A DNA stretch of 64,000 bases from Macrostomum hystrix (lineage: Eukaryota > Animalia > Platyhelminthes), in contig CATNEN010000001.1 in the NCBI GenBank assembly GCA_950097015.1, positions 18,414,001 to 18,478,000 of the forward strand, written 5' to 3'. This document shows, in pieces, positions 1 through 62,336 of the stretch; the stretch's first letter is position 1, and the number at the start of each line of letters is the position of its first letter. The position numbers were made by a program, and so were the translations under genes. The notes under the pieces were generated by a model. It ran no database searches, was not told the origin of the DNA, and saw nothing but the letters and a program-made list of their open reading frames with translations.

Positions 1-3000
1 CTACAACTACGACCACTCCCACAACGACTACTACGACGACACCAACGACAACAACCACGCCGTCGACCACTACCACAGCTTCAACAACAACACCATCGAC
101 TACAAGCACCACAACACCGTTAACTACTACCACTACGACAGCTTCTACTACAAGCACAACAACACCTTCAACTACAACCACCACAACACCAACAGCAACT
201 ACTACAACGACACCGACAACTACAACTACGACCACTCCCACAACGACTACTACGACGACACCAAAGACAACGACCACGCCAACGACTACTACCACAGCTT
301 CAACGACAACACCGACAAGCACAACTACCACACCGACAACAACGACGACTCCGACAACGACGACTTCAACAAGCACGAGTACTACTCCGACAACGACTAC
401 GTCAAGCACGACAACTAGCGCCACGACTACTGAAGTTGTGCTCGGAAAGTCGACAACTAGCATAGCGCGTTGCCTAGAGACCAATTTCATGGCTGACAGC
501 AGTGTAATCAGTCTGAGCGACATTTCAGTGAGCGCTTCCACACAGGGCATTGGTCTGATTCCGACTTCCGAATACGACCTGCTTCGTCCGACCAGCACTG
601 GACTGAATATTAACCGAGTCGCGACGCCGTCTTCAGCGACAGAAAGCATCCAGTTTGATTTCAATGTGAGCAACGACGATCTCAGCAACTCTATTATTGG
701 CCTGCTGTCCATCTCAACGACCAGTCCTGGATTCATTTCGTCGATTGAGTTAAAGTCTGCCCCAGACGCTGTGTCTCCATTCACATCGGTCAAGCTGGCC
801 GTGGGCGCCGCAGATGTGGCCAACTGCATGTTTGATTTCATCTCGTGCGCCTCTGTGAGCGGATTAGGTCTCCAGGCGTATCGAATCGCTCTAGTGTTCA
901 ACTTTACAAACACAGGCGGCAACCAGATCCCGATTCAAATCAACATGCTTGGCTGCTTCAACAAGCTCACAACATCATCAAGTACTACAACAACAACACC
1001 GACGACGACTACAACACCAACTACGACGACTGGAACAACGACAACTACGGCAACAACGACACCTCCCGGCATTTGCATTGATGTCGACGGTCTTGCTGAC
1101 GAGACCGTTATTCCCTTGTCGGAAATTAGCATTATCAATGGAACTCAGCTCGGCGGATATAACGCTTCAGAGCTCAACTACTTGCGTCTATCCTCGCCAG
1201 TGCCATTCAACCTCAACAGACCAACACCTTCTTCGTTTGCAAATCCTAACGAAAGCATCCTGATTGAAGTCAAGACTTCGGCTGGAAGTCCAGTAGCAAC
1301 AATTGTCGGAAGGATCCAGCTCGAATTCAACACCCCCGACATTCAAGCTGTGCGGCTCTACAATAAGCAGACTAACACACAAGTCACTTGGGACACCTAC
1401 TTCTTCTCTGGTGCAAACCTGACTACGTGCAAGTCAAACCTGCTGGCCTGCATTCCGCCCACACCGTCGACCATTAACTCGACCGTAATGCGCTTCGAAA
1501 TTTTCTACAACTCCGTCACGGATCGTAACTCAGTCGACATTCAAATTGGCATATACGGTTGCTTCCCAACGAAAACGACCCAGTCAACAACCACGACTTC
1601 GCCAACAACGACAACAACACCAACTACAACTACAACTACAACACCTACGACTACAACACCGTCAACTACAACACCGTCGACTACAAGAACAACAACACCT
1701 TTGACTACAAGCACTACAACCCCTTCGACTACAACCACCACAACAGCTTCGACTACAAGAACAACAACACCTTTGACTACAAGCACAACAACACCGTCAA
1801 CTACAACCACCACAACCCCATCAACAACTACAACAACGCCACCGACAACTACAACAACGACCTCTCCCACAACGACTACGACGACGACACCAACGACTAC
1901 AACCACGCCGTCGACCACTACCACAGCTTCAACAACAACACCGTCGACTACAAGCACTACAACCCCTTCGACTACAACCACCACAACAGCTTCGACTACA
2001 AGCACAACAACACCTTCAACTACAACCACCACAACACCAACAGCAACTACTACAACGACACCGACAACTACAACTACGACCACTCCCACAACGACTACTA
2101 CGACGACACCAACGACAACGACCACGCCAACGACCACTACCACAGCTTCAACGACAACACCGACAAGCACAACTACCACACCGACAACAACGACGACTCC
2201 GACAACGACGACTTCAACAAGCACGAGTACTACTCCGACAACGACTACGTCAAGCACGACAACTAGCGCCACGACTACTGAAGTTGTGCTCGGAAAGTCG
2301 ACAACTAGCATAGCGCGTTGCCTAGAGACCAATTTCATGGCTGACAGCAGTGTAATCAGTCTGAGCGACATTTCAGTGAGCGCTTCCACACAGGGCATTG
2401 GTCTGATTCCGACTTCCGAATACGACCTGCTTCGTCCGACCAGCACTGGACTGAATATTAACCGAGTCGCGACGCCGTCTTCAGCGACAGAAAGCATCCA
2501 GTTTGATTTCAATGTGAGCAACGACGATCTCAGCAACTCTATTATTGGCCTGCTGTCCATCTCAACGACCAGTCCTGGATTCATTTCGTCGATTGAGTTA
2601 AAGTCTGCCCCAGACGCTGTGTCTCCATTCACATCGGTCAAGCTGGCCGTGGGCGCCGCAGATGTGGCCAACTGCATGTTTGATTTCATCTCGTGCGCCT
2701 CTGTGAGCGGATTAGGTCTCCAGGCGTATCGAATCGCTCTAGTGTTCAACTTTACAAACACAGGCGGCAACCAGATCCCGATTCAAATCAACATGCTTGG
2801 CTGCTTCAACAAGCTCACAACATCATCAAGTACTACAACAACAACACCGACGACGACTACAACACCAACTACGACGACTGGAACAACGACAACTACGGCA
2901 ACAACGACACCTCCCGGCATTTGCATTGATGTCGACGGTCTTGCTGACGAGACCGTTATTCCCTTGTCGGAAATTAGCATTATCAATGGAACTCAGCTCG

Positions 3001-6000
3001 GCGGATATAACGCTTCAGAGCTCAACTACTTGCGTCTATCCTCGCCAGTGCCATTCAACCTCAACAGACCAACACCTTCTTCGTTTGCAAATCCTAACGA
3101 AAGCATCCTGATTGAAGTCAAGACTTCGGCTGGAAGTCCAGTAGCAACAATTGTCGGAAGGATCCAGCTCGAATTCAACACCCCCGACATTCAAGCTGTG
3201 CGGCTCTACAATAAGCAGACTAACACACAAGTCACTTGGGACACCTACTTCTTCTCTGGTGCAAACCTGACTACGTGCAAGTCAAACCTGCTGGCCTGCA
3301 TTCCGCCCACACCGTCGACCATTAACTCGACCGTAATGCGCTTCGAAATTTTCTACAACTCCGTCACGGATCGTAACTCAGTCGACATTCAAATTGGCAT
3401 ATACGGTTGCTTCCCAACGAAAACGACCCAGTCAACAACCACGACTTCGCCAACAACGACAACAACACCAACTACAACTACAACTACAACACCTACGACT
3501 ACATCACCGTCAACTACAACACCGTCGACTACAAGAACAACAACACCTTTGACTACAAGCACTACAACCCCTTCGACTACAACCACCACAACAGCTTCGA
3601 CTACAAGAACAACAACACCTTTGACTACAAGCACAACAACACCGTCAACTACAACCACCACAACCCCATCAACAACTACAACAACGCCACCGACAACTAC
3701 AACAACGACCTCTCCCACAACGACTACGACGACGACACCAACGACTACAACCACGCCGTCGACCACTACCACAGCTTCAACAACAACACCGTCGACTACA
3801 AGCACTACAACCCCTTCGACTACAACCACCACAACAGCTTCGACTACAAGCACAACAACACCGTCAACTACAACCACCACAACACCAACATCAACTACTA
3901 CAACGACACCGACAACTACAACTACGACCACTCCCACAACGACTACTACGACGACACCAACGACAACGACCACGCCAACGACCACTACCACAGCTTCAAC
4001 AACAACACCGTCGACTACAAGCACCACAACACCGTTAACTACTACCACTACGACAGCTTCGACTACAAGCACAACAACACCTTCAACTACAACCACCACA
4101 ACACCAACAGCAACTACTACAACGACACCGACAACTACAACTACGACCACTCCCACAACGACTACTACGACGACACCAACGACAACGACCACGCCAACGA
4201 CCACTACCACAGCTTCAACGACAACACCGACAAGCACAACTACCACACCGACAACAACGACGACTCCGACAACGACGACTTCAACAAGCACGAGTACTAC
4301 TCCGACAACGACTACGTCAAGCACGACAACTAGCGCCACGACTACTGAAGTTGTGCTCGGAAAGTCGACAACTAGCATAGCGCGTTGCCTAGAGACCAAT
4401 TTCATGGCTGACAGCAGTGTAATCAGTCTGAGCGACATTTCAGTGAGCGCTTCCACACAGGGCATTGGTCTGATTCCGACTTCCGAATACGACCTGCTTC
4501 GTCCGACCAGCACTGGACTGAATATTAACCGAGTCGCGACGCCGTCTTCAGCGACAGAAAGCATCCAGTTTGATTTCAATGTGAGCAACGACGATCTCAG
4601 CAACTCTATTATTGGCCTGCTGTCCATCTCAACGACCAGTCCTGGATTCATTTCGTCGATTGAGTTAAAGTCTGCCCCAGACGCTGTGTCTCCATTCACA
4701 TCGGTCAAGCTGGCCGTGGGCGCCGCAGATGTGGCCAACTGCATGTTTGATTTCATCTCGTGCGCCTCTGTGAGCGGATTAGGTCTCCAGGCGTATCGAA
4801 TCGCTCTAGTGTTCAACTTTACAAACACAGGCGGCAACCAGATCCCGATTCAAATCAACATGCTTGGCTGCTTCAACAAGCTCACAACATCATCAAGCAC
4901 TACAACAAAATTCACCACTTCAACACCGACGACAACGACACCTCCCGGCATTTGCATTGATGTCGACGGTCTTGCTGACGAGACCGTTATTCCCTTGTCG
5001 GAAATTAGCATTATCAATGGAACTCAGCTCGGCGGATATAACGCTTCAGAGCTCAACTACTTGCGTCTATCCTCGCCAGTGCCATTCAACCTCAACAGAC
5101 CAACACCTTCTTCGTTTGCAAATCCTAACGAAAGCATCCTGATTGAAGTCAAGACTTCGGCTGGAAGTCCAGTAGCAACAATTGTCGGAAGGATCCAGCT
5201 CGAATTCAACACCCCCGACATTCAAGCTGTGCGGCTCTACAATAAGCAGACTAACACACAAGTCACTTGGGACACCTACTTCTTCTCTGGTGCAAACCTG
5301 ACTACGTGCAAGTCAAACCTGCTGGCCTGCATTCCGCCCACACCGTCGACCATTAACTCGACCGTAATGCGCTTCGAAATTTTCTACATCTCCGTCACGG
5401 ATCGTAACTCAGTCGACATTCAAATTGGCATATACGGTTGCTTCCCAACGAAAACGACCCAGTCAACAACCACGACTTCGCCAACAACGACAACAACACC
5501 AACTACAACTACAACTACAACACCTACAACGACTACAACACCGTCAACTACAACACCGTCGACTACAAGCATTACAACCACTTCGACTACAACCACCACA
5601 ACAGCTTCGACTACAAGAACAACAACACCTTTGACTACAAGCACTACAACCCCTTCGACTACAAGCACAACAACACCTTCGACTACAAGCACAACAACAC
5701 CCACAACAACTACAACTACGACCACTCCCACAACGACTTCGACGACGACACCAACGACTACAACCACGCCAACGACCACTACCACAGCTTCAACAACAAC
5801 ACCGTCGACTACAAGCACTACAACCCCTTCGACTACAACCACCACAACAGCTTCGACTACAAGCACAACAACACCGTCAACTGCAACCACCACAACACCC
5901 ACAACAACTACGACTACGACCACTCCCACAACGACTACGACGACGACACCAACGACAACAACCACGCCGTCAACCACTACCACAGCTTCAACAACAACAG

Positions 6001-9000
6001 CGTCAACTACAACCACAACACCGTTAACTACAACCACCACAACAGCTTCGACTACAAGCACAACAACACCGTCAACTACAACCACCACAACACCAACAGC
6101 AACTACTACAACGACACCGACAACTACAACTACGTCCAATCCCACAACGACTTCTACGACGAAACCAACAACAACGACCACGCCATCGTCCACTACCACA
6201 GCTTCAACAACAACACCGTCGTCTACAAGCACTACAACCCCTTCGACTGCAACCACCACGACAGCTTCGACTACAAGCACAACAACACCGTCAACTACAA
6301 CCACCACAACACCAACAGCAACTACTACAACGACACCGACAACTACAACTACGACCACTCCCACAACGACTTCGACGACGACACCAACGACTACAACCAC
6401 GCCGTCGACCACTACCACAGCTTCAACAACAACACCGTCGACTACAAGCACTACAACCCCTTCGACTACAACCACCACAACAGCTTCGACTACAAGAACA
6501 ACAACACCTTTGACTACAACCACCACAACACCAACGACAACTACAACTACGACCACTCCCACAACGACTACGACGACGACACCAACGACAACAACCACGC
6601 CGTCAACCACTACTACAGCTTCAACAACAACACCGTCGTCTACAAGCACCACAACTCCGTCAAGTACTACCAGCACGACAGCTTCGACTACAAGCACAAC
6701 AACACCGTCAACTACAACCACCACAACACCAACAGCAACTACTACAACGATACCGACAACTACAACTACGACCACTCCCACAACGACTACTACGACGACA
6801 CCAACGACTACAACCACGCCGTCGACCACTACCACAGCTTCAACAACAACACCGTCGACTACAAGCACCACAACACCGTTAACTACTACCACCACGACAG
6901 CTTCTACTACAAGCACAACAACACCTTCAACTACAACCACCACAACACCAACAGCAACTACTACAACGACACCGACAACTACAACTACGACCACTCCCAC
7001 AACGACTACGACGACGACACCAACGACAACGACCACGCCAACGACCACTACCACAGCTTCAACAACAACACCGACAAGCACAACTACCACACCGACAACA
7101 ACGACGACTCCGACAACGACGACTTCAACAAGCACGAGTACTACTCCGACAACGACTACGTCAAGCACGACAACTAGCGCCACGACTACTGAAGTTGTGC
7201 TCGGAAAGTCGACAACTAGCATAGCGCGTTGCCTAGAGACCAATTTCATGGCTGACAGCAGTGTAATCAGTCTGAGCGACATTTCAGTGAGCGCTTCCAC
7301 ACAGGGCATTGGTCTGATTCCGACTTCCGAATACGACCTGCTTCGTCCGACCAGCACTGGACTGAATATTAACCGAGTCGCGACGCCGTCTTCAGCGACA
7401 GAAAGCATCCAGTTTGATTTCAATGTGAGCAACGACGATCTCAGCAACTCTATTATTGGCCTGCTGTCCATCTCAACGACCAGTCCTGGATTCATTTCGT
7501 CGATTGAGTTAAAGTCTGCCCCAGACGCTGTGTCTCCATTCACATCGGTCAAGCTGGCCGTGGGCGCCGCAGATGTGGCCAACTGCATGTTTGATTTCAT
7601 CTCGTGCGCCTCTGTGAGCGGATTAGGTCTCCAGGCGTATCGAATCGCTCTAGTGTTCAACTTTACAAACACAGGCGGCAACCAGATCCCGATTCAAATC
7701 AACATGCTTGGCTGCTTCAACAAGCTCACAACATCATCAAGTACTACAACAACAACACCGACGACGACTACAACACCAACTACGACGACTGGAACAACGA
7801 CAACTACGGCAACAACGACACCTCCCGGCATTTGCATTGATGTCGACGGTCTTGCTGACGAGACCGTTATTCCCTTGTCGGAAATTAGCATTATCAATGG
7901 AACTCAGCTCGGCGGATATAACGCTTCAGAGCTCAACTACTTGCGTCTATCCTCGCCAGTGCCATTCAACCTCAACAGACCAACACCTTCTTCGTTTGCA
8001 AATCCTAACGAAAGCATCCTGATTGAAGTCAAGACTTCGGCTGGAAGTCCAGTAGCAACAATTGTCGGAAGGATCCAGCTCGAATTCAACACCCCCGACA
8101 TTCAAGCTGTGCGGCTCTACAATAAGCAGACTAACACACAAGTCACTTGGGACACCTACTTCTTCTCTGGTGCAAACCTGACTACGTGCAAGTCAAACCT
8201 GCTGGCCTGCATTCCGCCCACACCGTCGACCATTAACTCGACCGTAATGCGCTTCGAAATTTTCTACAACTCCGTCACGGATCGTAACTCAGTCGACATT
8301 CAAATTGGCATATACGGTTGCTTCCCAACGAAAACGACCCAGTCAACAACCACGACTTCGCCAACAACGACAACAACACCAACTACAACTACAACTACAA
8401 CACCTACAACGACTACAACACCGTCAACTACAACACCGTCGACTACAAGCACTACAACCCCTTCGACTACAACCACCACAACAGCTTCGACTACAAGAAC
8501 AACAACCCCTTCGACTACAAGCACAACAACACCTTCGACTACAAGCACAACAACACCAACAACAACTACGACTACGACCACTCCCACAACGACTACTACG
8601 ACGACACCAACGACTACAACCACGCCGTCGACCACTACCACAGCTTCAACAACAACACCGTCGTCTACAAGCACTACAACCCCTTCGACTACAACCACCA
8701 CAACAGCTTCGACTACAAGCACAACAACACCGTCAACTACAACCACCACAACACCAACAAGAACTACAACTACGACCACTCCCACAACGACTACGACGAC
8801 GACACCAACGACTACAACCACGCCGTCGACCACTACCACAGCTTCAACAACAACACCGTCGACTACAAGCACTACAACCCCTTCGACTACAACCACCACA
8901 ACAGCTTCGACTACAAGAACAACAACACCTTTGACTACAACCACCACAACACCAACAACAACTACAACTACGACCACTCCCACAACGACTACGACGACGA

Positions 9001-12000
9001 CACCAACGACAACAACCACGCCGTCAACCACAACCACAGCTTCAACAACAACACCGTCGACTACAAGCACCACAACACCGTTAACTACTACCACCACGAC
9101 AGCTTCGACTACAAGCACAACAACACCGTCAACTACAGCCACCACAACACCAACAGCAACTACTACAACGACACCGACAACTACAACTACGACTACGACC
9201 ACTCCCAGAACGACTACTACGACGACACCAACGACTACAACCACGCCGTCGACCACTACCACAGCTTCAACAACAACACCGTCGTCTACAAGCACTACAA
9301 CCCCTTCGACTACAACCACCACAACAGCTTCGACTACAAGCACAACAACACCGTCAACTACAACCACCACAACACCAACAAGAACTACAACTACGACCAC
9401 TCCCACAACGACTACGACGACGACACCAACGACAACAACCACGCCGTCGACCACTACCACAGCTTCAACAACAACACCGTCGACTACAAGCACCACAACA
9501 CCGTTAACTACTACCACCACGACAGCTTCTACTACAAGCACAACAACACCTTCAACTACAACCACCACAACACCAACAGCAACTACTACAACGACACCGA
9601 CAACTACAACTACGACCACTCCCACAACGACTACTACGACGACACCAACGACAACGACCACGCCAACGACCACTACCACAGCTTCAACGACAACACCGAC
9701 AAGCACAACTACCACACCGACAACAACGACGACTCCGACAACGACGACTTCAACAAGCACGAGTACTACTCCGACAACGACTACGTCAAGCACGACAACT
9801 AGCGCCACGACTACTGAAGTTGTGCTCGGAAAGTCGACAACTAGCATAGCGCGTTGCCTAGAGACCAATTTCATGGCTGACAGCAGTGTAATCAGTCTGA
9901 GCGACATTTCAGTGAGCGCTTCCACACAGGGCATTGGTCTGATTCCGACTTCCGAATACGACCTGCTTCGTCCGACCAGCACTGGACTGAATATTAACCG
10001 AGTCGCGACGCCGTCTTCAGCGACAGAAAGCATCCAGTTTGATTTCAATGTGAGCAACGACGATCTCAGCAACTCTATTATTGGCCTGCTGTCCATCTCA
10101 ACGACCAGTCCTGGATTCATTTCGTCGATTGAGTTAAAGTCTGCCCCAGACGCTGTGTCTCCATTCACATCGGTCAAGCTGGCCGTGGGCGCCGCAGATG
10201 TGGCCAACTGCATGTTTGATTTCATCTCGTGCGCCTCTGTGAGCGGATTAGGTCTCCAGGCGTATCGAATCGCTCTAGTGTTCAACTTTACAAACACAGG
10301 CGGCAACCAGATCCCGATTCAAATCAACATGCTTGGCTGCTTCAACAAGCTCACAACATCATCAAGTACTACAACAACAACACCGACGACGACTACAACA
10401 CCAACTACGACGACTGGAACAACGACAACTACGGCAACAACGACACCTCCCGGCATTTGCATTGATGTCGACGGTCTTGCTGACGAGACCGTTATTCCCT
10501 TGTCGGAAATTAGCATTATCAATGGAACTCAGCTCGGCGGATATAACGCTTCAGAGCTCAACTACTTGCGTCTATCCTCGCCAGTGCCATTCAACCTCAA
10601 CAGACCAACACCTTCTTCGTTTGCAAATCCTAACGAAAGCATCCTGATTGAAGTCAAGACTTCGGCTGGAAGTCCAGTAGCAACAATTGTCGGAAGGATC
10701 CAGCTCGAATTCAACACCCCCGACATTCAAGCTGTGCGGCTCTACAATAAGCAGACTAACACACAAGTCACTTGGGACACCTACTTCTTCTCTGGTGCAA
10801 ACCTGACTACGTGCAAGTCAAACCTGCTGGCCTGCATTCCGCCCACACCGTCGACCATTAACTCGACCGTAATGCGCTTCGAAATTTTCTACAACTCCGT
10901 CACGGATCGTAACTCAGTCGACATTCAAATTGGCATATACGGTTGCTTCCCAACGAAAACGACCCAGTCAACAACCACGACTTCGCCAACAACGACAACA
11001 ACACCAACTACAACTACAACTACAACACCTACAACGACTACAACACCGTCAACTACAACACCGTCGACTACAAGCACTACAACCCCTTCGACTACAACCA
11101 CCACAACAGCTTCGACTACAAGAACAACAACCCCTTCGACTACAAGCACAACAACACCTTCGACTACAAGCACAACAACACCAACAACAACTACGACTAC
11201 GACCACTCCCACAACGACTACTACGACGACACCAACGACTACAACCACGCCGTCGACCACTACCACAGCTTCAACAACAACACCGTCGTCTACAAGCACT
11301 ACAACCCCTTCGACTACAACCACCACAACAGCTTCGACTACAAGCACAACAACACCGTCAACTACAACCACCACAACACCAACAAGAACTACAACTACGA
11401 CCACTCCCACAACGACTACGACGACGACACCAACGACAACAACCACGCCGTCGACCACTACCACAGCTTCAACAACAACACCGTCGACTACAAGCACCAC
11501 AACACCGTTAACTACTACCACCACGACAGCTTCTACTACAAGCACAACAACACCTTCAACTACAACCACCACAACACCAACAGCAACTACTACAACGACA
11601 CCGACAACTACAACTACGACCACTCCCACAACGACTACTACGACGACACCAACGACAACAACCACGCCAACGACCACTACCACAGCTTCAACGACAACAC
11701 CGACAAGCACAACTACCACACCGACAACAACGACGACTCCGACAACGACGACTTCAACAAGCACGAGTACTACTCCGACAACGACTACGTCAAGCACGAC
11801 AACTAGCGCCACGACTACTGAAGTTGTGCTCGGAAAGTCGACAACTAGCATAGCGCGTTGCCTAGAGACCAATTTCATGGCTGACAGCAGTGTAATCAGT
11901 CTGAGCGACATTTCAGTGAGCGCTTCCACACAGGGCATTGGTCTGATTCCGACTTCCGAATACGACCTGCTTCGTCCGACCAGCACTGGACTGAATATTA

Positions 12001-15000
12001 ACCGAGTCGCGACGCCGTCTTCAGCGACAGAAAGCATCCAGTTTGATTTCAATGTGAGCAACGACGATCTCAGCAACTCTATTATTGGCCTGCTGTCCAT
12101 CTCAACGACCAGTCCTGGATTCATTTCGTCGATTGAGTTAAAGTCTGCCCCAGACGCTGTGTCTCCATTCACATCGGTCAAGCTGGCCGTGGGCGCCGCA
12201 GATGTGGCCAACTGCATGTTTGATTTCATCTCGTGCGCCTCTGTGAGCGGATTAGGTCTCCAGGCGTATCGAATCGCTCTAGTGTTCAACTTTACAAACA
12301 CAGGCGGCAACCAGATCCCGATTCAAATCAACATGCTTGGCTGCTTCAACAAGCTCACAACATCATCAAGTACTACAACAACAACACCGACGACGACTAC
12401 AACACCAACTACGACGACTGGAACAACGACAACTACGGCAACAACGACACCTCCCGGCATTTGCATTGATGTCGACGGTCTTGCTGACGAGACCGTTATT
12501 CCCTTGTCGGAAATTAGCATTATCAATGGAACTCAGCTCGGCGGATATAACGCTTCAGAGCTCAACTACTTGCGTCTATCCTCGCCAGTGCCATTCAACC
12601 TCAACAGACCAACACCTTCTTCGTTTGCAAATCCTAACGAAAGCATCCTGATTGAAGTCAAGACTTCGGCTGGAAGTCCAGTAGCAACAATTGTCGGAAG
12701 GATCCAGCTCGAATTCAACACCCCCGACATTCAAGCTGTGCGGCTCTACAATAAGCAGACTAACACACAAGTCACTTGGGACACCTACTTCTTCTCTGGT
12801 GCAAACCTGACTACGTGCAAGTCAAACCTGCTGGCCTGCATTCCGCCCACACCGTCGACCATTAACTCGACCGTAATGCGCTTCGAAATTTTCTACAACT
12901 CCGTCACGGATCGTAACTCAGTCGACATTCAAATTGGCATATACGGTTGCTTCCCAACGAAAACGACCCAGTCAACAACCACGACTTCGCCAACAACGAC
13001 AACAACACCAACTACAACTACAACTACAACACCTACAACGACTACAACACCGTCAACTACAACACCGTCGACTACAAGCACTACAACCCCTTCGACTACA
13101 ACCACCACAACAGCTTCGACTACAAGAACAACAACCCCTTCGACTACAAGCACAACAACACCTTCGACTACAAGCACAACAACACCAACAACAACTACGA
13201 CTACGACCACTCCCACAACGACTACTACGACGACACCAACGACTACAACCACGCCGTCGACCACTACCACAGCTTCAACAACAACACCGTCGTCTACAAG
13301 CACTACAACCCCTTCGACTACAACCACCACAACAGCTTCGACTACAAGCACAACAACACCGTCAACTACAACCACCACAACACCAACAAGAACTACAACT
13401 ACGACCACTCCCACAACGACTACGACGACGACACCAACGACAACAACCACGCCGTCGACCACTACCACAGCTTCAACAACAACACCGTCGACTACAAGCA
13501 CCACAACACCGTTAACTACTACCACCACGACAGCTTCTACTACAAGCACAACAACACCTTCAACTACAACCACCACAACACCAACAGCAACTACTACAAC
13601 GACACCGACAACTACAACTACGACCACTCCCACAACGACTACTACGACGACACCAACGACAACGACCACGCCAACGACCACTACCACAGCTTCAACGACA
13701 ACACCGACAAGCACAACTACCACACCGACAACAACGACGACTCCGACAACGACGACTTCAACAAGCACGAGTACTACTCCGACAACGACTACGTCAAGCA
13801 CGACAACTAGCGCCACGACTACTGAAGTTGTGCTCGGAAAGTCGACAACTAGCATAGCGCGTTGCCTAGAGACCAATTTCATGGCTGACAGCAGTGTAAT
13901 CAGTCTGAGCGACATTTCAGTGAGCGCTTCCACACAGGGCATTGGTCTGATTCCGACTTCCGAATACGACCTGCTTCGTCCGACCAGCACTGGACTGAAT
14001 ATTAACCGAGTCGCGACGCCGTCTTCAGCGACAGAAAGCATCCAGTTTGATTTCAATGTGAGCAACGACGATCTCAGCAACTCTATTATTGGCCTGCTGT
14101 CCATCTCAACGACCAGTCCTGGATTCATTTCGTCGATTGAGTTAAAGTCTGCCCCAGACGCTGTGTCTCCATTCACATCGGTCAAGCTGGCCGTGGGCGC
14201 CGCAGATGTGGCCAACTGCATGTTTGATTTCATCTCGTGCGCCTCTGTGAGCGGATTAGGTCTCCAGGCGTATCGAATCGCTCTAGTGTTCAACTTTACA
14301 AACACAGGCGGCAACCAGATCCCGATTCAAATCAACATGCTTGGCTGCTTCAACAAGCTCACAACATCATCAAGTACTACAACAACAACACCGACGACGA
14401 CTACAACACCAACTACGACGACTGGAACAACGACAACTACGGCAACAACGACACCTCCCGGCATTTGCATTGATGTCGACGGTCTTGCTGACGAGACCGT
14501 TATTCCCTTGTCGGAAATTAGCATTATCAATGGAACTCAGCTCGGCGGATATAACGCTTCAGAGCTCAACTACTTGCGTCTATCCTCGCCAGTGCCATTC
14601 AACCTCAACAGACCAACACCTTCTTCGTTTGCAAATCCTAACGAAAGCATCCTGATTGAAGTCAAGACTTCGGCTGGAAGTCCAGTAGCAACAATTGTCG
14701 GAAGGATCCAGCTCGAATTCAACACCCCCGACATTCAAGCTGTGCGGCTCTACAATAAGCAGACTAACACACAAGTCACTTGGGACACCTACTTCTTCTC
14801 TGGTGCAAACCTGACTACGTGCAAGTCAAACCTGCTGGCCTGCATTCCGCCCACACCGTCGACCATTAACTCGACCGTAATGCGCTTCGAAATTTTCTAC
14901 AACTCCGTCACGGATCGTAACTCAGTCGACATTCAAATTGGCATATACGGTTGCTTCCCAACGAAAACGACCCAGTCAACAACCACGACTTCGCCAACAA

Positions 15001-16400
15001 CGACAACAACACCAACTACAACTACAACTACAACACCTACAACGACTACAACACCGTCAACTACAACACCGTCGACTACAAGCACTACAACCCCTTCGAC
15101 TACAACCACCACAACAGCTTCGACTACAAGAACAACAACCCCTTCGACTACAAGCACAACAACACCTTCGACTACAAGCACAACAACACCAACAACAACT
15201 ACGACTACGACCACTCCCACAACGACTACTACGACGACACCAACGACTACAACCACGCCGTCGACCACTACCACAGCTTCAACAACAACACCGTCGTCTA
15301 CAAGCACTACAACCCCTTCGACTACAACCACCACAACAGCTTCGACTACAAGCACAACAACACCGTCAACTACAACCACCACAACACCAACAAGAACTAC
15401 AACTACGACCACTCCCACAACGACTACGACGACGACACCAACGACAACAACCACGCCGTCGACCACTACCACAGCTTCAACAACAACACCGTCGACTACA
15501 AGCACCACAACACCGTTAACTACTACCACCACGACAGCTTCTACTACAAGCACAACAACACCTTCAACTACAACCACCACAACACCAACAGCAACTACTA
15601 CAACGACACCGACAACTACAACTACGACCACTCCCACAACGACTACTACGACGACACCAACGACAACGACCACGCCAACGACCACTACCACAGCTTCAAC
15701 GACAACACCGACAAGCACAACTACCACACCGACAACAACGACGACTCCGACAACGACGACTTCAACAAGCACGAGTACTACTCCGACAACGACTACGTCA
15801 AGCACGACAACTAGCGCCACGACTACTGAAGTTGTGCTCGGAAAGTCGACAACTAGCATAGCGCGTTGCCTAGAGACCAATTTCATGGCTGACAGCAGTG
15901 TAATCAGTCTGAGCGACATTTCAGTGAGCGCTTCCACACAGGGCATTGGTCTGATTCCGACTTCCGAATACGACCTGCTTCGTCCGACCAGCACTGGACT
16001 GAATATTAACCGAGTCGCGACGCCGTCTTCAGCGACAGAAAGCATCCAGTTTGATTTCAATGTGAGCAACGACGATCTCAGCAACTCTATTATTGGCCTG
16101 CTGTCCATCTCAACGACCAGTCCTGGATTCATTTCGTCGATTGAGTTAAAGTCTGCCCCAGACGCTGTGTCTCCATTCACATCGGTCAAGCTGGCCGTGG
16201 GCGCCGCAGATGTGGCCAACTGCATGTTTGATTTCATCTCGTGCGCCTCTGTGAGCGGATTAGGTCTCCAGGCGTATCGAATCGCTCTAGTGTTCAACTT
16301 TACAAACACAGGCGGCAACCAGATCCCGATTCAAATCAACATGCTTGGCTGCTTCAACAAGCTCACAACATCATCAAGTACTACAACAACAACACTGACG
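1..16400 (+). repeat. Coding macro-repeat: [domain A - short Thr linker - domain B - long PTS tract] x7 plus a final domain A
   Basis: Domain A (CLETNF...MLGCF, 163 aa) starts at 471, 2319, 4386, 7230, 9855, 11859, 13863 and 15867. Domain B (CIDVDG...IYGCF, 164 aa) starts at 1074, 2922, 4953, 7833, 10458, 12462 and 14466. A-to-A periods are 1848, 2067, 2844, 2625, 2004, 2004 and 2004 bp. The length differences lie in the Thr-rich tracts. Confidence 0.97.
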
Positions 16401-19400
16401 ACCACACCGACAACGACTACCGTTACGACTGCTATTTCCTCTACATCCTTTACGACATCGCCGCCTATATCGACTGTGACTGCAACCTGCATTATGATGT
16501 CTCCCAGTAAGTTTTTTGATTTAGAAGTAGTGTGGAAGTAGTTATTTGTGTAGATAACTAACAATTGTAAAGTATAATAATTGTTTTATGGCTTGTAACT
16601 CCTTCCGTTTTTTTCAGCGTCTCCGCCTCCGTGTCTCTCTCGTGGTGACTGTGAGTGTTTATTTTCTCTTAGTGAGGTTTTTAGTCAGATCGGCATCTAC
16701 CCTTCGAGTGTATGGGTTGAACTGGACAGCTCTAGTGGGCTTACTTTGCCGAGTGAACGGATTAACGAAGGTGATCTCCTGGAGTCCGGCGTTGTGGCAT
16801 CGTTTTCTTGTGGTCATTGCGGCTGTGAGAACGGCGCTCTTCGTTGTACTAAAACGAATTGCTCGCAGAACTGCCAATGGAGTCAATGGCTTCCCTGGAG
16901 CTCATGTTCAGCTACCTGTGGCACTGGCGTTCGCTTCCGAAATCGTACGGTCGCTTCCCCTGCTGGGCCTGGCGGTGCGCCCTGTAGTTCAAACGAGTTC
17001 GAGGTACGTTTGTTTGGCTATTTAAGAATTTTAGATTGAGTACTTCAGTCCCATTCGCGGGTCAGTAATTAATAAATTACTCGCCTTTTAGGATGTTGAG
17101 CTGTGCAACACACAGAGTTGTCCATGCACTTGGACACAGTGGTCAGCCTGGTCTGAATGCTCGCAGTCATGCAGTGGTGGCATTAAAACTCGCTCGCGGC
17201 AGTCGTCAGGACCCTGTCTGCAGGACGATGCTTCAACTTCCAGCGCACTTTGCAACGTTCATGCGTGCGGTGTTACCACAACGTCTGGAGTTTGCTCAGG
17301 TGGAAAAGTTCTGCGGCCATGCAGCAGTATGTCCTGTCCTTACACCTGTGGACACGTGACGAATGAGACTTGCTCTGACGCAACCGCTTGCTCAACAGGC
17401 TGCTTTTGCGAATCTGGATTTGTTTTCGACGAATCAACTAGCGCCTGTGTGAGACCCGAGCAGTGCACATGCGACCTTACCACGATCCGCTGCGGCTCCT
17501 GCTCGCAGGCCCGTTGCATAAACGGCATAGCCAGCTGTGTTCCAACCGCCAACTGCGACTGCTCCTGGGGACCCTGGTCTGATTGGGGTCCTTGCACCCG
17601 ACCGTGCGACGGTGGCAGCCGGACAAGGATGCGCTCTATGGCCACGCAACGTCGAGGCGCCGGAAGGCCGTGTGTAGGCTCAGCCCAGGAGTCAGAGCCG
17701 TGCAATGCTGCACGATGTCCTGGCTGCACTGACCGGTTCGGTAACCTCATCCCGCCAGGCGAGACGATGCCCTCTGACAGCGGTTGCGAGGTTTGTTTCT
17801 GTAGCTTTAACACTCACCAGCGCGTGTGCCTGCCCAGCCCGGACAGCGGACCGCCGCCCAGCTGGTCCAAGTGGTCCGACTACTCTGGCTGCAGTGCGCC
17901 GTGCGGCACCGGCACGCGACGCCGCAGTCGAGCCTGCATGCGTCTTTGCGCTAATGATACTAGAGCCTGCGCTCCTGACGCTAACGGTCGCATGGACTCC
18001 GATCAACAGCCGTGCAACCAGCAGGATTGCAAGCCGCCTGTCGACTGTCAGGTGAATATTGAAATCATCTTAACAAAAACTTTTTGTTTGTTTGAACAGT
18101 CAACCTTTGCAGCAGCAAGAATTCGGGGATGAGGGCCTGTTCTTGTGCTCTTTCTTCTCTTTATCTAACCTTAAACAAATAGGCATTACCTATACCTATA
18201 TAGGCATTGAATAAAAGGATCTACCAGTTGCTTAACAAACTTAGTAAAATCTAATACGGCTGTTCTATGGTTCATTAGAGCATATGGTCATGAATTGAAC
18301 AAAAATCCTGGTTGCAGGTGAGCGACTGGACCAATGGCACCTGCTATGCCCAGTGCGACGGCGTCAACCCAACGGCATCTGGTCAGCAGCTGCGCCTACG
18401 AACAATCACGCAGCACTCGGCCAACGGCGGCCGGCCCTGCCCGAGCACCTACGAGGTCGCCACTTGTTCCAGGGAGTGCCCCGTGGACTGCCTTGTCGGC
18501 CAGTGGTCCGAGTGGAGCGAAACTGTCAAGCCCTGCGTCGGCACCGTCTACAACCCGAGCTGCGGTGTCGGCGAGCGCGTTCGCACCCGCCCGGTGCTTC
18601 GACCGGCGTCCAACGGCGGCCAGACTTGTCGAGATCGCGAGTACCGACCCTCGCTGATGCCCTGCAATGAGACATCGTGTAGTGGCCCAGAGACGGTGAT
18701 CGAGTGCGCTACAAGATGCTGGCGGACCTGTGCAGATGTTCGTGCTAATAAACAATGCCAGGATGCTGGCTGTGTTCAGGTGAGATTTTAAAATGTCGAG
18801 ATGGGTTCAGGCTTCTTTATTGCATTGCGAAATCTAGAGTATATTTTTCAAAAATTCACAAATTTGAAATAATAATTCTTAGGGCTGCGGCTGCTCCGGA
18901 GATCGAGTTCGCGAAGGCGACTCATGCGTTAGTATTGACCAATGCAACTGTGCTCACCCAGATGATGCGAATCGACTGATGGCTCCGGGCTCCACTGTGA
19001 CCAAGGGCTGCAACAGCTGTACCTGCACCAATGGCCAGTTTGCCTGCGAGACCAAGAGCTGCGCCCAGGACTGCGAATGGACGGCATGGAAGAAGGTTGG
19101 CGGCTGCAATGTCACCTGCGGCACCGGAAAGCAGATCTGGACTCGGTGAGTGACTGGAACCTCTGAAACATCAGACTGTTGCTTTCGTCCGTCTGTGCTT
19201 AAGTGCTCACCCACAAGCACTCCTACACTGCTCACAGTGATATTTGCTCCTAGCAAAGCCCAGTCCATTTCACCTAGCCCAGTTGGCCAGACGGCCAGTT
19301 ACGCAGCATCAGCAATTGGCGCGGCACTTCAATCGTTGTGGACAGCCTGCTCAGTCCAAGGACTGGAAAGGCCACCACAGGCACCCGAATCTCTATCCTA

Positions 19401-20740
19401 GCCGATGCTAGAACCCATTCTAGCACTAGGAATTGCAGAAAGGCTGTTCCAACTCCCAAACTATCGGTCACAAGTCCGACTCTCTAACGAATGGGCTACA
19501 GCTCCCATGATTGAATATGTGCTAATTCTCATAGTGCTCATAGTACTAATACGCTCGTATATGTCATAATGCGGACTGTTGCGCGTTTCGTCAGATCTGT
19601 CGCCCGGCCAGCCAGCGGCAGCGGCGCGGACTGCACAGGCCCGGCACAAAAGTACACCGACTGCTTCGGCGATGAGGGCGCCTGCTGCCAGCCAAACGAC
19701 GCTTACGTGGATTCTGGCCGCTGCGAGACCACCTGCCAGCAGCTGCTGAGCCCGAGTGTCCAGCAGCCGGCAGCCAGCTGTCAGCCAGGCTGCCAGTGCA
19801 AGGCGGGAATGGTTCGAGACACCGCCTCAGGTGCCTGCATCCGCTTGCAGGACTGCTTCGCCTGTCGGGGCCCGAATGGCGCTGTTTATCCCAACGGCTA
19901 CACTGTTGTGGACCGAGCTGCGAACTGCAGCAAGCGCTATTGCCTACAAGGCACGCTGGTGACTAGACCTCTAACGGCCGATGAAGTTCCGCCCTGCACT
20001 CAAGCCGATGAGCTTTTGGCAGCCGGCAGCTCCGGAGAGACGGTGACTCGGGTGCTGGACTCTGCCGGCGGCTGCTGCTACCGGGCCTTCGTCGGGGTGT
20101 GCCGCCGAGCGAGGACTCTGCTACGCGAAGCCCACCGGCCAGGCCAGCGGCCATGCAAATTCACGAAGCCCATCAGCATCGATCGGTGTGCTGGCGCCTG
20201 TCCTTCCAGTCACCATGTGCACGTTTCCGACAATGTGAGCCATTGATTCGCTTTGGTTCAAGAATATTATAATTAACTGTATAATGAACAGTACTAGCCG
20301 ACATGGTCAAGTTATACAATTCTGAAAGCAGAAAAGTTAAGCCTACATTGTAGATTTTGCCGCAAACACCCTGACGAGAATCCTTGAATACCTTGACGAT
20401 GCCAATGTTTTGTGACTCTGGAAGTTGTTTAATCGGATAGAGAATTCTAGCCCGTGTTCTGGATTTTCATGGCGATTGGTTGAATATTTCGAAAAATTGT
20501 TGGGATTTGAAATACCCTGTGGTATTTCTACTGTTAATAAATCCATACAAAACTCGTGAAACCCATTTTCAGGGCGAAGTGAAAGTTGTCGGCGACTGCC
20601 AGTGCTGCAAGCCGACCGCTTACACAGCCAAGCCGGCGGTTTCTGTGCCCTGCACCGATGGCAGCAGCATGCTGCTGACTGTCTATGGTATTGAGAACTG
20701 CCGCTGCGTCCGGGTTGGATCCGACAAGCCGCCGCTTTAA
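3..20740 (+). CDS. Giant secreted mucin-like / SCO-spondin-like glycoprotein, 5'-truncated (at least 6460 aa visible): PTS repeats with tandem A/B domains, then RGD, ~7 TSP1, 3 TIL, several vWC-like modules and a C-terminal cystine knot
   Basis: The frame is open from position 3, so the track start at 438 is not the real start. Proposed exons: <3-16506, 16618-17003, 17092-18051, 18318-18779, 18883-19145, 19595-20234, 20573-20740. All are GT-AG with matching phases and sum to 19383 nt. TSP1 motifs include WSQWLPWSSCSATCG, WTQWSAWSECSQSC, WGPWSDWGPCTRPC and WSKWSDYSGCSAPCG. TIL motifs include CPYTC...CSTGCFCESG and CETTC...CQPGCQCKAG. The terminus reads RCAGAC...DCQCCKP...VPC...NCRC, a CTCK pattern. 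Confidence 0.9.
20385..20480. repeat. Dispersed ~100-bp repeat fragment, copy 1 (last mucin intron)
   Basis: GACGATGCCAATGTTTTGTGA(C/T)TCTGGAAGTTGTTT(A/C)ATCGGATAGAG...GTGTTCTG(G/C)ATTTTCATGGCGAT recurs in the same orientation at about 60255-60352. Confidence 0.75.
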
Positions 20741-22429
20741 ATCAATCGGCTCACTGAAGACAAACGTTAATGAAACATTTATGATAAAACAGCTGCACTG
20801 ACTCTCAGACTCTCAGATTTGAATTGGGTGGTGGAATTATATTCATTGTGCTATTCAACTTTTTAAGATTGGCCGGCATGGACGGTAAAAATGTAATCGT
20901 CCGATTCTTCGAAACAAATTAAACAGAGGGTTAACTAGAATTTAAACAATATATTAAAGTTTTGTTTCAAAATACTTGCAATTTATTTAAGCAATTTGTT
21001 AAAATATATGATATACTTTTAGTCATTAAGAACAATCGGATTTAAAGTAAAAAGATTACGAAAAACTATAAGATAAAGGCTATAATTGAACGAATTCAAT
21101 TATTATCACTCAAATAGTTAAATAATGATAGCAACATTAAGATTTGTAATTTAAATTCGAAGCTATAAGACACGGCTGTTATTATATTGATACAGTTAAT
21201 AGTAACTAATCTGTGTTAACATTACAGAAACGATAGTTATGATGCCCATTAATTTAAAATAATATCGTATTCCATAAATCAATTTTGTCAATAATTTGCC
21301 GCCTCTGGCACGAGACAAATCTGAGCACTGTAAGATTGAGCACAAAAGCCAACGGGCTAGAACATTAATTGATTGTTTGAATTGACTTTCATGAACGTAT
21401 TTTTGGTCTATTTTTCGATTGTTAATTATAGAAGTTCTTTTAGTTAAGATCTGATTTATTGTGCACTACATGGAAAACAAATAAACTACGGTATTGCATA
21501 AATATTTATTTTTGACTCTGGCATTCTCAAATGTGTGATTTTTATTAGTTCTTTCTTTCCTATGAGTTTATGTTTGATGGATTAGTCGGGATCAGGAAAT
21601 AGAAATTAAGGGCTAGGATAATCCTTACTTCATGTTTAATATTATAGGATTAACTTGATATTAACGTTTATTCTCGACATCAAACAATGCGGATTAGTAT
21701 TTTGTTAGTTCGCTAACTAAATAAAGATTTCGTTTTTTGCACAGATCTTGAATGTATTTAAATGTTGAATTCACAGATAGAGTATATTGCATAATATTAC
21801 AAAAACTACTGCTGACATTGACTTATGACTGTAAAAATAAGTCATAAGGATTGCTTGTTCTTAGGAATCATATGTATTAATAAATATCAAGAAAGGCAAC
21901 AAAAGCCTGCAAAATGATTATTGTAGCAAATTAAAAGAAAATAAAAACTGAGGCAAAAAATGAATAAACATTACAACCCATGCGATTATAAACGGCAGAA
22001 TGCTCTGCTATTGTAAAATAAAAATACAGAATTATCACTTCACTAATGGTCTCCATTACGAGACAACAATCTTTATAACACACTACCACGTAATACAAAA
22101 AAGTAAAAATTGTAACAATTTGACAAATGACAAAAAGCGATAGTGAATGGCGAGTTTATCAGATAGACAACAGGAAAAAATATGAGGTGTTCAAGTGAGG
22201 ACACTTCGAAGTGTCGAAGCGTCGAAGTGTAGCTGAGCGGAATCGATTCAGATTTTCGCACCAAATAGTCATGAGTTCGAATCCCGAGAAAATTAAGACC
22301 CTTATTGTGTAATTTACGCGGACACCTAGCTTGGAGTGTCGACGAAAAGCGAAATATATTTCCCACCGAAAATAATCTACAGTGAATTTGACGGTCTTCA
22401 CAATGTCAAATTTGTCACTCCTTTCCGCA

Positions 22430-28400: not shown

Positions 28401-31400
28401 ACCATATTAAGCTACAACCCTACTAGGCTACAACCCCCTACTAGGCTACAACCCCCTACTAGGCTACAACCCCCTACTAGGCTACAACCCCCTACTAGGC
28501 TACAACCCCCTACTAGGCTACAACCATATTAAGCTACAACCCTACTAGGCTACAACCCCCTACTAGGCTACAACCCCCTACTAGGCTACAACCCCCTACT
28601 AGGCTACAACCCCCTACTAGGCTACAACCCCCTACTAGGCTACAACCCCCTACTAGGCTACAACCCCCTACTAGGCTACAACCCCCTACTAGGCTACAAC
28701 CACCATATTAAGCTACAACTCCCTGTTAGGCTACGACCCCGTACAAAGCTACAACCCCCTAGTAGGCTACAAACCCCTACAACGCTACAACCCCCTAGTA
28801 GGCTACAAACCCCTACAACGCTACAACATCCTACAATTAATATTGGTTATATTGTACGAGCTATTGACTATATTATTACTTTCTATATATTCTTGAACCA
28901 ATATGGAGGTTTTTGCAGGGCATTGTTAGTTGTCATGAAAGTTAGTTGATCGTAAAGGGCGAAAATTTTGATCCCTACGACAATCAGTCATTCTGTTTGG
29001 GAGCTATTGGGAAGTAGGCAGCGGGTATTTAAAATAACCCGTGGTATTTCCCAGGTGGAAAGATAACTTGGTTTTCATGTTAACTAAGCGTCCTTTCTCT
29101 TATTCCAAGGCATTCCAAGCAGCCACCAACCCAGCAGGATCTTGGCAGGCGACTCAGGCGGCAGCCAGAAGATGACCAGGGTGAGCATGGACAGCAGGAT
29201 GCAGGGCACCACCAGGATGGCCACGTAGAATGACGGATTGCGCATCATGCGGATGCAGAACTCCAGAATTCTGTACCGCTTCATCACTGGCCGGCCTCGT
29301 GAATCGAAGCCTGTCTCGTTGCGGTAGCTGACAACGCTGCGAATCTGTTTGAGCCGCAGGTCGGGGTCGGCAATGTCAACCTCGTATTCGCCGTCCGTCT
29401 CCCATTCGTTGCTCTTCACGTAGTCATTGTAGTCCACGAATGGCAGCGGCTTTGGCACTGAGTGGGTGGCATTCACCTGAATCTCCGTCAGGGACCAGTC
29501 CAGCATCAGCTGACTCTCATCGTAGGTCCAGGAGCCGAATTTTATGCGGCATTCCTGAATTTTATTAGGGACAGGTGGAAATGACCGATTGAAACACCTG
29601 TGAGTAGGATGAATGGGATAATGACCGATCGAAACTCTTGTGAGTAGGATGAATAGGATAATTATGACCGATTGAAACACCTGTGAGTAGGATGAATGGG
29701 ATAATGACCGACTGAAACACCTGTGAGTAGGATGAATGGGATAATGACGTATTGAAACACCTGTACGTGAGTAGGATGAATGGGATAATTATGACCGATT
29801 GAAACACCTGTGAGTAGGATGAATGGGATAATGACCGATTGAAACACCTGTGAGTAGGATGAATGGGATAATGACCGATTGAAACACCTGTGAGTAGGAT
29901 GAATGGGATAATGACCGATTGAAACACCTGTGAGTAGGATGAATGGGATAATGACCGATTGAAACACCTGTGAGTAGGATGAATGGGATAATGACCGATT
30001 GAAACACCTGTGAGTAGGATGAATGGGATAATGACCGATTGAAACACCTGTGAGTAGGATGAATGGGATAATGACCGATTGAAACACCTGTGAGTAGGAT
30101 GAATGGGATAATGACCGATTGAAACACCTGTGAGTATGATGAATGGGATAATGACCGATTGAACGATTGAATATTATCGCACTAACTCACCTGCGTGTCG
30201 AATGGAAAGTTCAGAATCTTGACCTTGCACGTGCTCTTGAGCAGGGCTTGCGGAATCCAGAGAATCTCTCCGCTGCTCTGCACAACCACTCTGGCTTCGC
30301 GCTTCTCGCGCATGCGTTCATCAGCGCTGAAAGTGTTAATTGATAGGTGGATGGTGATGTCTAACAGGTGGACGGTTGTGTCTGACAGGTAGATGGTTGT
30401 GTCTAACAGGTGGATGGTTGTGTCTAACAGGTGTATGGTTGTGTCTAACAGGTAGATGGTTGTGTCTAACAGGTGGATAGTTGTGTCTAACAGGTGGATT
30501 GTTATGTCTAACAGGTAGATGGTTGTGTCTAACAGGTGGATGGTTGTGTCTAACAGGTGTATGGTTGTGTCTAACAGGTAGATGGTTGTGTCTAACAGGT
30601 AGATGGTTGTGTCTAACAGGTGTATGGTTGTGTCTAACAGGTAGATGATTGTGTCTAACAGGTGGATGGTTGTGACTAACAGGTGGATGGTTGTGACTAA
30701 CAGGTGGATGGTTGTGACTAACAGATGGATGGTTGTGTCTAACAGGTGGATGGTTGTGACTAACAGGTGGATGGTTGTGTCTAACAGGTGGATGGTTGTG
30801 ACTAACAGGTGGATGGTGATGTCTAACAGGTGGATGGTTGTGACTAACAGGTGGATGGTGATGTCTAACAGGTGGATGGTTGTGTCTGACAGGTGGATGG
30901 TTGTGACTAACAGGTGGATGGTGATGTCTAACAGGTGGATGGTTGTGTCTGACAGGTGGATGGTTGTGTCTAACAGGTGGATGGTTGTGACTAACAGGTG
31001 GATGGTTGTGACTAACAGGTGGATGGTTGTGTCTAACAGGTGGATGGTTGTGACTAACAGGTGGATGGTTGTGACTAACAGGTGTATGGTTGTGTCTAAC
31101 AGGTAGATGGTTGTGTCTAACAGGTGGATGGTTGTGTCTAACAGGTGGATTGTTATGTCTAACAGGTAGATGGTTGTGTCTAACAGGTGGATGGTTGTGT
31201 CTAACAGGTGTATGGTTGTTTCTAACAGGTAGATGGTTGTGTCTAACAGGTGTATGGTTGTGTCTAACAGGTAGATGGTTGTGTCTAACAGGTGGATGGT
31301 TGTGACTAACAGGTGGATGGTTGTGTCTAACAGGTGGATGGTTGTGACTAACAGATGGATGGTTGTGTCTAACAGGTGGATGGTTGTGACTAACAGGTGG

Positions 31401-55900: not shown

Positions 55901-56004
55901 AGGGTCTGATCCGGCATTTCCGGCCCGAACTGGAACGAAGAATGGCCGCCTTCGCAGCTACTGGCAAGAATCAGAGTCGCAGCGCTGCCAGCGGCAGTCA
56001 CTGA
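52971..56004 (+). CDS. NDUFV1: NADH:ubiquinone oxidoreductase 51-kDa flavoprotein subunit (complex I), mitochondrial, 482 aa
   Basis: Exons 52971-53519, 54719-55256 and 55643-56004. Arg/Ser/Leu-rich transit peptide, then [63 protein letters not shown] and the Fe-S motif [12 protein letters not shown]...ICALGD. Confidence 0.98.
53700..54580. repeat. 27-bp minisatellite CAGTCTTTATCCTACATTATCTGGTTT, about 32 units, NDUFV1 intron 1
   Basis: Tandem 27-bp period with a homogeneous centre and degenerate edges. Confidence 0.96.
55308..55562. repeat. About 22-bp minisatellite AGAGTCTCAGGTAGACTCCAGT, about 12 units, NDUFV1 intron 2
   Basis: Degenerate tandem repeat. Confidence 0.9.
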
Positions 56005-59085: not shown

Positions 59086-59185
59086 AGCAGTAGCTGCAGA
59101 TTATCTGTTGTCATGTGAAACAAGAAAATTAATGCATTCACACATCTTAATTAAAAAAAAATTGCAGAATCTCTTTTTCCTAACA

Positions 59186-61950: not shown

Positions 61951-62177
61951 CCCTTTATATTAGTTATACTGTTAAGTTTCCCACTTAGACCAATAGGGAT
62001 TCGCCATTGAGTTTATACAGAGCAATGTGAGTTGTCTTTGTCACCAGAATCGCTGAATATCTCGACGATGATCTAAGAGGTTCTTAGATCCTATGTTAGC
62101 TAAGAGGTTCATTGTACTTCAGACAATCAAAAACGAACCGCTTTCGTGTAAAAAAACAGTCTTTTAACTTCTTCAAA

Positions 62178-62321: not shown

Positions 62322-62336
62322 TTTGTTGCCAGCAGC

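Follow-up and report, generated by a model that had tools for sequence, protein, structure and literature searches.

We analysed a 64,000-nucleotide stretch of the genome of the flatworm Macrostomum hystrix (assembly GCA_950097015.1, contig CATNEN010000001.1, positions 18,414,001 to 18,478,000), hereafter called the window, with all coordinates counted from its first letter. Its left part holds a large segment of a forward-strand (+) gene that encodes a giant Thr-rich protein interspersed with two related domains, A and B, which we call beads. A single open frame runs from 3 to 16541 (+) without a stop codon, with its codons in frame 3 and with Thr making up 41% of its residues. The left end of the window lies inside this central exon; 40 kb of upstream sequence place the exon start at -4542, and spliced transcript contigs place its 3' border, with a GT donor, at 16506, before the in-frame stop at 16541. 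The whole central exon comprises 7027 open codons (about 21 kb), and its part inside the window (1-16506, +), as defined by the open frame and the spliced contigs, encodes tracts rich in Pro, Thr and Ser (PTS tracts) together with the A and B beads. An earlier note on this DNA, made from its letters alone, had let the array run from 471 to 16353; this extent agrees with what we find inside the window, but the exon extends further on both sides, to the two borders just given.

Domain A is 163 and domain B 164 residues long, and both alternate with Thr-rich tracts. Eight A and seven B beads (15 in total) lie in the window, and ten A and nine B beads (19) in the whole exon, in line with the at least 15 alternating copies that the earlier note had counted. 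All of them are on the + strand. The first pair consists of A copy 1 (471-959), which was recognised by the A-B alignment, and B copy 1 (1074-1565), the copy used for folding; both have a predicted discoidin-like fold (see below). A copy 2 (2319-2807) is identical in DNA to copy 1, and the following beads were assigned by bead comparison: B copy 2 (2922-3413), A copy 3 (4386-4874), A copy 4 (7230-7718), B copy 4 (7833-8324), A copy 5 (9855-10343), B copy 5 (10458-10949), A copy 6 (11859-12347), B copy 6 (12462-12953), A copy 7 (13863-14351) and B copy 7 (14466-14957). B copy 3 (4953-5444) is the sole variant, differing by one nucleotide that changes N to I, and A copy 8 (15867-16355) is the last bead, which is followed by a unique Thr/Ser tail of 50 residues. 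The linkers from A to B are Thr-rich and 38 residues long, apart from the shorter one of 26 residues that precedes B copy 3. Those from B to A measure 251-595 residues, consist of about 70% Thr, 12% Ser and 11% Pro, and are made of 198/219-nucleotide sub-repeats, as exemplified by the 251-residue tract at 1566-2318 (+). Open reading frames (ORFs) that appear antisense and off-frame across the PTS tracts were rejected as by-products of the low-complexity runs of ACN codons.

The beads are nearly invariant at the DNA level: all ten A copies are 100% identical, and the B copies vary at a single nucleotide. Therefore, the array has either been homogenised recently, or been partly polished with short reads so as to look homogenised. 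In its strongest form the latter view would make the regular array largely an artefact of assembly or polishing, the true beads being fewer or more divergent, and both the identity of the copies and the fact that the assembly combined long reads with Illumina data (PMC10468722) speak in its favour. However, the PTS tracts between the beads vary in both length (251-595 residues) and sequence, and an independent paralogue of the same build exists on contig 7 (see below). The transcript contigs, moreover, carry domain A joined to the A-to-B linker and also to the unique tail, and by a rough measure the k-mer depth over A in these contigs is five to eight times (5-8x) that of the single-copy 3' exons, a rough sign of many bead copies in the transcripts. 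We consider a largely artefactual array extremely unlikely.

The gene is transcribed and spliced, as evidenced by polyadenylated Logan transcript contigs from four runs belonging to two studies. These contigs define six GT..AG joints (16506/16618, 17003/17092, 18048/18315, 18779/18883, 19145/19595 and 20234/20573) and end in poly(A) after 20946, the stop codon being located at 20738-20740; according to the junction arithmetic, the exon phases are compatible with a single reading frame. The exons were translated and searched for domains one by one, and the domain content is therefore given per exon. Downstream of the central exon, the spliced contigs and domain searches give, all on the + strand, an exon with a VWC-like piece and a TSP1 (16618-17003), an exon with TSP1, TIL, TSP1, a Cys-rich piece and TSP1 (17092-18048), an exon with two TSP1 and the start of a TIL (18315-18779), and an exon with the remainder of this TIL/Cys-rich module and the start of a TSP1 (18883-19145). 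The exon at 19595-20234 encodes a TIL and the first half of a cystine-knot-like tail (CAGAC, corresponding to the CxGxC motif), and the last exon (20573-20946), delimited by the spliced contigs and poly(A), encodes the second half (CQCC.P ... CRC) followed by the stop codon and the 3' untranslated region. Together, these exons carry about seven TSP1 and three TIL domains ahead of the tail. The earlier note had proposed a CTCK tail, and the Cys pattern CxGxC, CC.P, CxC is indeed present, split over the last two exons; however, the domain search adds just a weak match (E 0.039), in which the last exon alone aligns with the terminal part of the DAN cystine-knot model.

Two observations on the transcribed region stand apart. 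Within the last intron, at 20440-20540, many contigs, with all four runs represented, break off or depart from the sequence and the depth is raised, apparently because of a dispersed repeat with expression from other places. A macroalgae metagenome run contains 5% of the sampled words of 15860-20300, and may hold a relative of Macrostomum or a conserved piece of sequence.

The upstream exons encode an EGF-like module with a CCEGY motif ahead of it, as well as three VWD-C8-TIL units, a VWC-like piece and LDLa, and the giant exon itself opens with the end of an LDLa; counted over the upstream exons and the start of the giant exon, VWD, C8 and TIL each occur three times and LDLa twice. With the SCO-spondin group the gene has in common the three VWD-C8-TIL units and LDLa of its front, and the TSP1/TIL repeats and cystine-knot-like end of its back. 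Since the domain order agrees as well (an EGF/EMI-like motif, three VWD-C8-TIL units, LDLa, TSP1 with TIL, and a knot-like end), the locus could be a flatworm SCO-spondin orthologue proper, building a Reissner-fibre-like or neural thread rather than mucus or glue. Vertebrate SCO-spondin, however, has about 25 TSP1 repeats and is thus far richer in them than this gene with its seven or so. Furthermore, three quarters of the protein consist of PTS tracts and beads, several paralogues occur in the genome, and Pfam EMI has no match in the upstream exons, though the CCEGY motif and the EGF-like module are present. Some invertebrate mucin-like proteins have themselves been suggested as SCO-spondin orthologues (Lang et al. 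2016, PMC4948705), which adds to the case for orthology, but on balance we regard a neural or fibre-forming SCO-spondin at this locus as very unlikely.

Domains A and B align with each other from end to end with 28% identity (BLASTP, E 1e-11), a similarity well above what chance would give and one that the earlier note had observed, and its four Cys per domain are found at positions 1, 119, 126 and 162/163. Among the seven distinct bead sequences of the two genes in which the family occurs, the invariant positions are C1, an L-R pair, an E, a G, C119, C126 and a terminal G-C163 (B numbering), so that the first and last Cys (C1 and C162/163) are kept in all seven. The beads are acidic (isoelectric points 4.1-4.5) and carry N-glycosylation sequons. 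Aromatic residues are scarce in A, with no Trp and two Tyr, and more frequent in B, with one Trp and six Tyr. A phmmer search of B against 1.84 billion representative proteins returned nothing at E<=0.001; as it missed the paralogue from the same genome too, the library seems to be without this species, and the blank is uninformative on other Macrostomum species. Likewise, a profile of the seven variants matched none of 5.8 billion proteins of 90-285 residues at E<=0.01, and the last A with its tail, taken as a region of an 881-residue query, matched none of the proteins of 485-1541 residues, a range that would take in ap2b fragments; the candidates in this search were probably flooded by Thr-rich words.

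We predicted the structures of both domains with AlphaFold2, and obtained confident beta-sandwiches that are consistent with each other and have matching strand order, with a mean predicted local distance difference test score of 89.1 for B and 89.7 for A, and a predicted template modelling (TM) score of 0.87 for both. The predicted fold is an eight-stranded jelly roll. When the models were compared with the PDB by Foldseek, nearly all matches were to discoidin-type domains: B retrieved the discoidin domain of DDR2 (6e-5), followed by neuropilin b1b2, CASPR2, factor VIII C2, lactadherin C2, retinoschisin and CBM32, and A retrieved the same families, namely, CBM32, factor VIII and DDR. VIA-align, which is independent of Foldseek and was run on 48,161 representative chains, gave for B the Z-scores 11.6 (IFT25), 11.2 (CBM32), 10.3 (NRP2), 10.1 (DDR1) and 9.8 (factor VIII), and for A 11.9 (CBM32), 11.1 (NRP1 b2), 11.1 (IFT25), 10.6 (DDR1), 10.3 (factor VIII) and 10.1 (factor V C2). 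All of its best 50 rows were galactose-binding-domain-like folds with Z of 9-12, covering the models from residue 1 to 163/164. The closest solved folds overall are those of DDR1/2, neuropilin b1/b2, factor V/VIII C1/C2, CASPR2, discoidin I, CBM32 and IFT25, and in ESM features the neighbours of B are F5/8C clusters (0.94). The fold had been chosen beforehand as the test on which the discoidin proposal of the earlier note would depend, and the models turned out to be galactose-binding-domain-like jelly rolls and not another fold. CysD, SEA or a new fold were ruled out for A and B, as Pfam searches gave no CysD or SEA match (in particular, none to Mucin2_WxxW/CysD in the beads) and both Foldseek and VIA-align point to discoidin-type folds. 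A prediction of A in complex with B, made without control runs, scored 0.00 and speaks neither for nor against an interaction.

In their length of about 160 residues and their predicted jelly roll, A and B resemble the discoidin and CBM32 domains (PF00754 and PF18344, of the galactose-binding-domain-like clan). As in the domains of DDR, neuropilin b, factor V/VIII C and CASPR2, the first and last residues are conserved Cys, and the full disulfide-bracketed domains of DDR1, DDR2, NRP1, CASPR2, factor V and factor VIII were aligned end to end. Since the structural alignments run from the first to the last residue of the models, the invariant terminal Cys correspond in position to the Cys that form the bracket disulfide in animal discoidin domains. 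A short helical segment around residues 113-126, which holds the conserved C-x6-C pair, is untypical of canonical discoidin domains. The models thus support the view that A and B are a subfamily of the discoidin/F5-8C/CBM32 fold that has diverged strongly and has a helical insert of its own.

A sister gene lies on contig 7 of the same genome (G000:C7, 4852600-4871100, minus strand), and within the genome the bead family comprises only this gene and that paralogue. The region encoding TSP1 in the contig-7 gene is 66% identical in DNA to 16.8-17.4 kb of the window. Like the gene in the window, the paralogue has beads with four Cys, A/B alternation, and short A-to-B and long B-to-A linkers, but its 14 beads fall into five subtypes and are less homogenised. 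Its A' beads are 50% identical to A and its B' beads 56% identical to B; the gene also has three more divergent A-like types, one of which is seen only by profile (E 9e-9). As A' groups with A, and B' with B, the split between A and B predates the duplication of the gene, and judged from their sequences A and B are old paralogues.

The age of this split bears on whether the beads do anything beyond filling space. Conceivably, A and B are mere structural spacers, i.e., compact, disulfide-stapled knobs that serve mechanics, protection from proteases or granule packing, with a fold that is just inherited. The drift of their sequences past recognition by PF00754 fits such a role, as do the N-glycosylation sequons on the beads, the lack of Trp in A, and the sole invariants (four Cys, L-R, E and two G), all of which seem to be positions of the core or framework. 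On the other hand, two bead types alternate strictly in both paralogues and have done so since before the duplication, which exceeds the needs of a spacer, and discoidin/CBM32 folds nearly always bind something at their loop end. We consider a pure spacer role unlikely, although it is the alternative to which we give the most weight. The strict alternation in both paralogues suggests two non-redundant specificities of A and B; it may, however, merely mirror the unit of duplication.

Among described proteins, ap2 of Macrostomum is one of the closest in overall build. It has an N-terminus of VWD, C8, TIL and LDL domains, a C-terminus of TIL and TSP1, and between them a giant core of two repeat units; it carries Gal-beta1,3-GalNAc O-glycosylation, and M. 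lignano, M. hystrix and other species need it to attach (PMC6410801, PMC8621496). Its core consists of a block of 21 x 255 residues followed by a block of 25 x 221 residues, with epitopes rich in Lys and Arg (PMC6410801). The ap2 proteins (Mlig-ap2, Mhtx-ap2a/b) share with this gene the genus, the front and back domain sets and a giant repeat core, which in both has two unit types of about 200-250 residues and spans many thousand residues; mucin-type O-glycosylation has been shown for ap2, and would be expected for this gene from its PTS tracts. Whereas ap2 has consecutive homogeneous blocks with basic epitopes, this gene has alternating beads with nearly pure Thr/Ser/Pro spacers of variable length, and, in a comparison made with the published description, more TSP1 before the first TIL than Mhtx-ap2b. 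Because of the alternating beads, the near-pure Thr/Ser/Pro spacers and the extra TSP1, we read the gene as an ap2-like paralogue.

The gene might, alternatively, be the characterised M. hystrix glue protein ap2 (Mhtx-ap2a/b) itself, whose role in temporary adhesion is known from RNA interference. The flanks are the same (VWD, C8, TIL and LDL on one side, TIL and TSP1 on the other), and the giant ap2 core defeated short-read assembly (PMC8621496, PMC6410801); moreover, M. hystrix ap2a has been described with three VWD and TIL ahead of LDL, as in this gene. Nevertheless, the ap2 core of consecutive 255-residue and 221-residue blocks (PMC6410801) does not agree with an alternation of A and B with Thr/Ser/Pro tracts, the C-terminus has extra TSP1 before the first TIL compared with the described Mhtx-ap2b, and there is at least one further gene of the same build in the genome, on contig 7. 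Identity with ap2 is, in our view, improbable.

The discoidin-type beads also relate the gene to other mucin-like proteins. Lang et al. (2016) reported a similarity between invertebrate mucin-like proteins and SCO-spondins, and described the F5_F8 domain as characteristic of Lophotrochozoa, whose mucin-like proteins have few, canonical F5_F8 domains located between VWD blocks (PMC4948705). In hemolectin, F5_F8 domains adjoin a small PTS region, whereas in this gene 19 divergent copies are spread over some 7,000 residues of PTS region. Hence, the claim of the earlier note that such an architecture was undescribed was overstated, as ap2 ends alike (PMC6410801, PMC8621496) and SCO-spondin-like mucins with F5_F8 have been reported (PMC4948705), and our finding is not new in principle, F5_F8-bearing, SCO-spondin-like mucins being known in Lophotrochozoa. 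Among the top matches listed for the mucin literature, there was none on discoidin beads inside PTS regions. Like this gene, the gel-forming mucins (MUC2, MUC5AC/B) combine N-terminal VWD domains, PTS regions with small beads that are disulfide-bonded (here by prediction) and a C-terminal knot or knot-like tail, so that both are built as beads on a string, and the A and B beads occupy the positions in the PTS region at which vertebrate mucins have CysD, as the earlier note had pointed out. However, the gel-mucin beads are CysD domains (about 110 residues, 10 Cys) and those of this gene have a predicted discoidin fold and four Cys, and the gel mucins end in VWD4-VWC and this gene in TSP1/TIL; the two are not orthologous.

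Taken together, these comparisons make it quite likely that the central exon and the 3' end at this locus are those of an M. hystrix gene, transcribed as shown above, for an SCO-spondin-like mucin that belongs to the architectural group of ap2. A number of observations weigh against this interpretation or against its discoidin component. The first exon and the signal peptide of the gene were not found, and short-read polishing of the assembly may in part account for the copies being perfectly identical. The input alignment for AlphaFold2 held only seven sequences from one genome, the structural matches have TM-scores of about 0.5 with identities of 10-19%, and the ESM Atlas features of A (0.78) have no consistent family and are uninformative. 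Furthermore, A, which lacks Trp and is poor in Tyr, differs in this from many CBM32 sites that bind sugars. The searches by sequence point the same way: Pfam hmmscan at E<=10 gave no match to PF00754, PF22633 or PF18344 for any of the seven bead variants, the PF00754 hidden Markov model (HMM) had 58 matches over the whole genome and none of them in the array, and the A1 bead profile had no match among the PDB sequences at E<=10. A and B thus differ from discoidin/CBM32 domains in being missed by the family HMMs, in their low identity to them, in the helical C-x6-C insert and, for A, in the few aromatics. By sequence criteria, membership in the discoidin family fails, and A and B are no members of PF00754; what holds of the earlier note's discoidin assignment is the fold, as modelled with AlphaFold2 and compared by Foldseek and VIA-align.

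If the locus encodes an SCO-spondin-like mucin, its predicted product would be a secreted glycoprotein of very roughly 9,000-9,500 residues, the middle of which is a Thr-rich tract of about 7,000 residues with ten A and nine B beads. The VWD front and the knot tail would polymerise the protein through disulfides, and the PTS tracts would be densely O-glycosylated and extended, with compact knobs breaking up their glycan brushes at intervals of 40 to 600 residues. The acidic, putatively N-glycosylated beads could bind glycans or partner proteins non-covalently at regular intervals along the chain, and such binding would cross-link the secretion or anchor it on a surface. This role would be analogous to that of CysD in vertebrate gel mucins and of discoidin modules in other marine glues. 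Discoidin and CBM32 folds generally bind ligands via loops at one end; given this and 19 knobs per chain, the protein may by analogy act as a multivalent cross-linker or surface binder. A more specific version, in which A and B are lectins for the protein's own mucin-type O-glycans, e.g., Gal-beta1,3-GalNAc, and the mucin cross-links itself, seems to us distinctly unlikely, if slightly less so than identity with ap2. If it were true, two alternating bead types would create a reversible, glycan-mediated network, a lectin-based counterpart of the CysD cross-links, which would have evolved by expansion of a discoidin module inside an SCO-spondin scaffold.

Temporary adhesion and mucus of flatworms are models for reversible wet glues, and the repeat cores of the giant proteins had no structural assignment. 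With the models described above, a discoidin-type fold can be putatively assigned to the beads of this gene and, via the bead family, to those of its sister on contig 7. This defines a domain subfamily that current family databases overlook, and its members are modules of about 160 residues that could be expressed for tests of glycan, surface or self binding. In evolutionary terms, an SCO-spondin-type scaffold would have been turned into a mucin by amplifying one module of a predicted lectin fold together with PTS spacers.

The remainder of the window contains several other genes. On the minus strand, a gene for a Cys-loop (neurotransmitter-gated) ion channel occupies 29084-35300; its introns contain minisatellites of 21 nucleotides and similar lengths, which give rise to long spurious ORFs such as that at 30182-32530. 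A 180-residue ORF among the exons of the channel gene (33565-34107, +) has a weak PNMA/gag-like match (E 1e-4) and is probably the remnant of a retroelement. A PLAT plus lipoxygenase gene with intronic minisatellites lies at 43402-45984 (+), and a multi-exon gene for NDUFV1, the 51-kDa subunit of complex I, with a proline-rich presequence, at 52971-56004 (+), one intron of which harbours a minisatellite of the 24-nucleotide type (53678-54566). Finally, three tandem, apparently single-exon genes with Sulfotransfer_4 matches (PF17784, E 1e-59 to 1e-62) are located at 59108-59941, 60424-61206 and 62112-63134 (+), and each of them encodes a hydrophobic stretch at the C-terminus.

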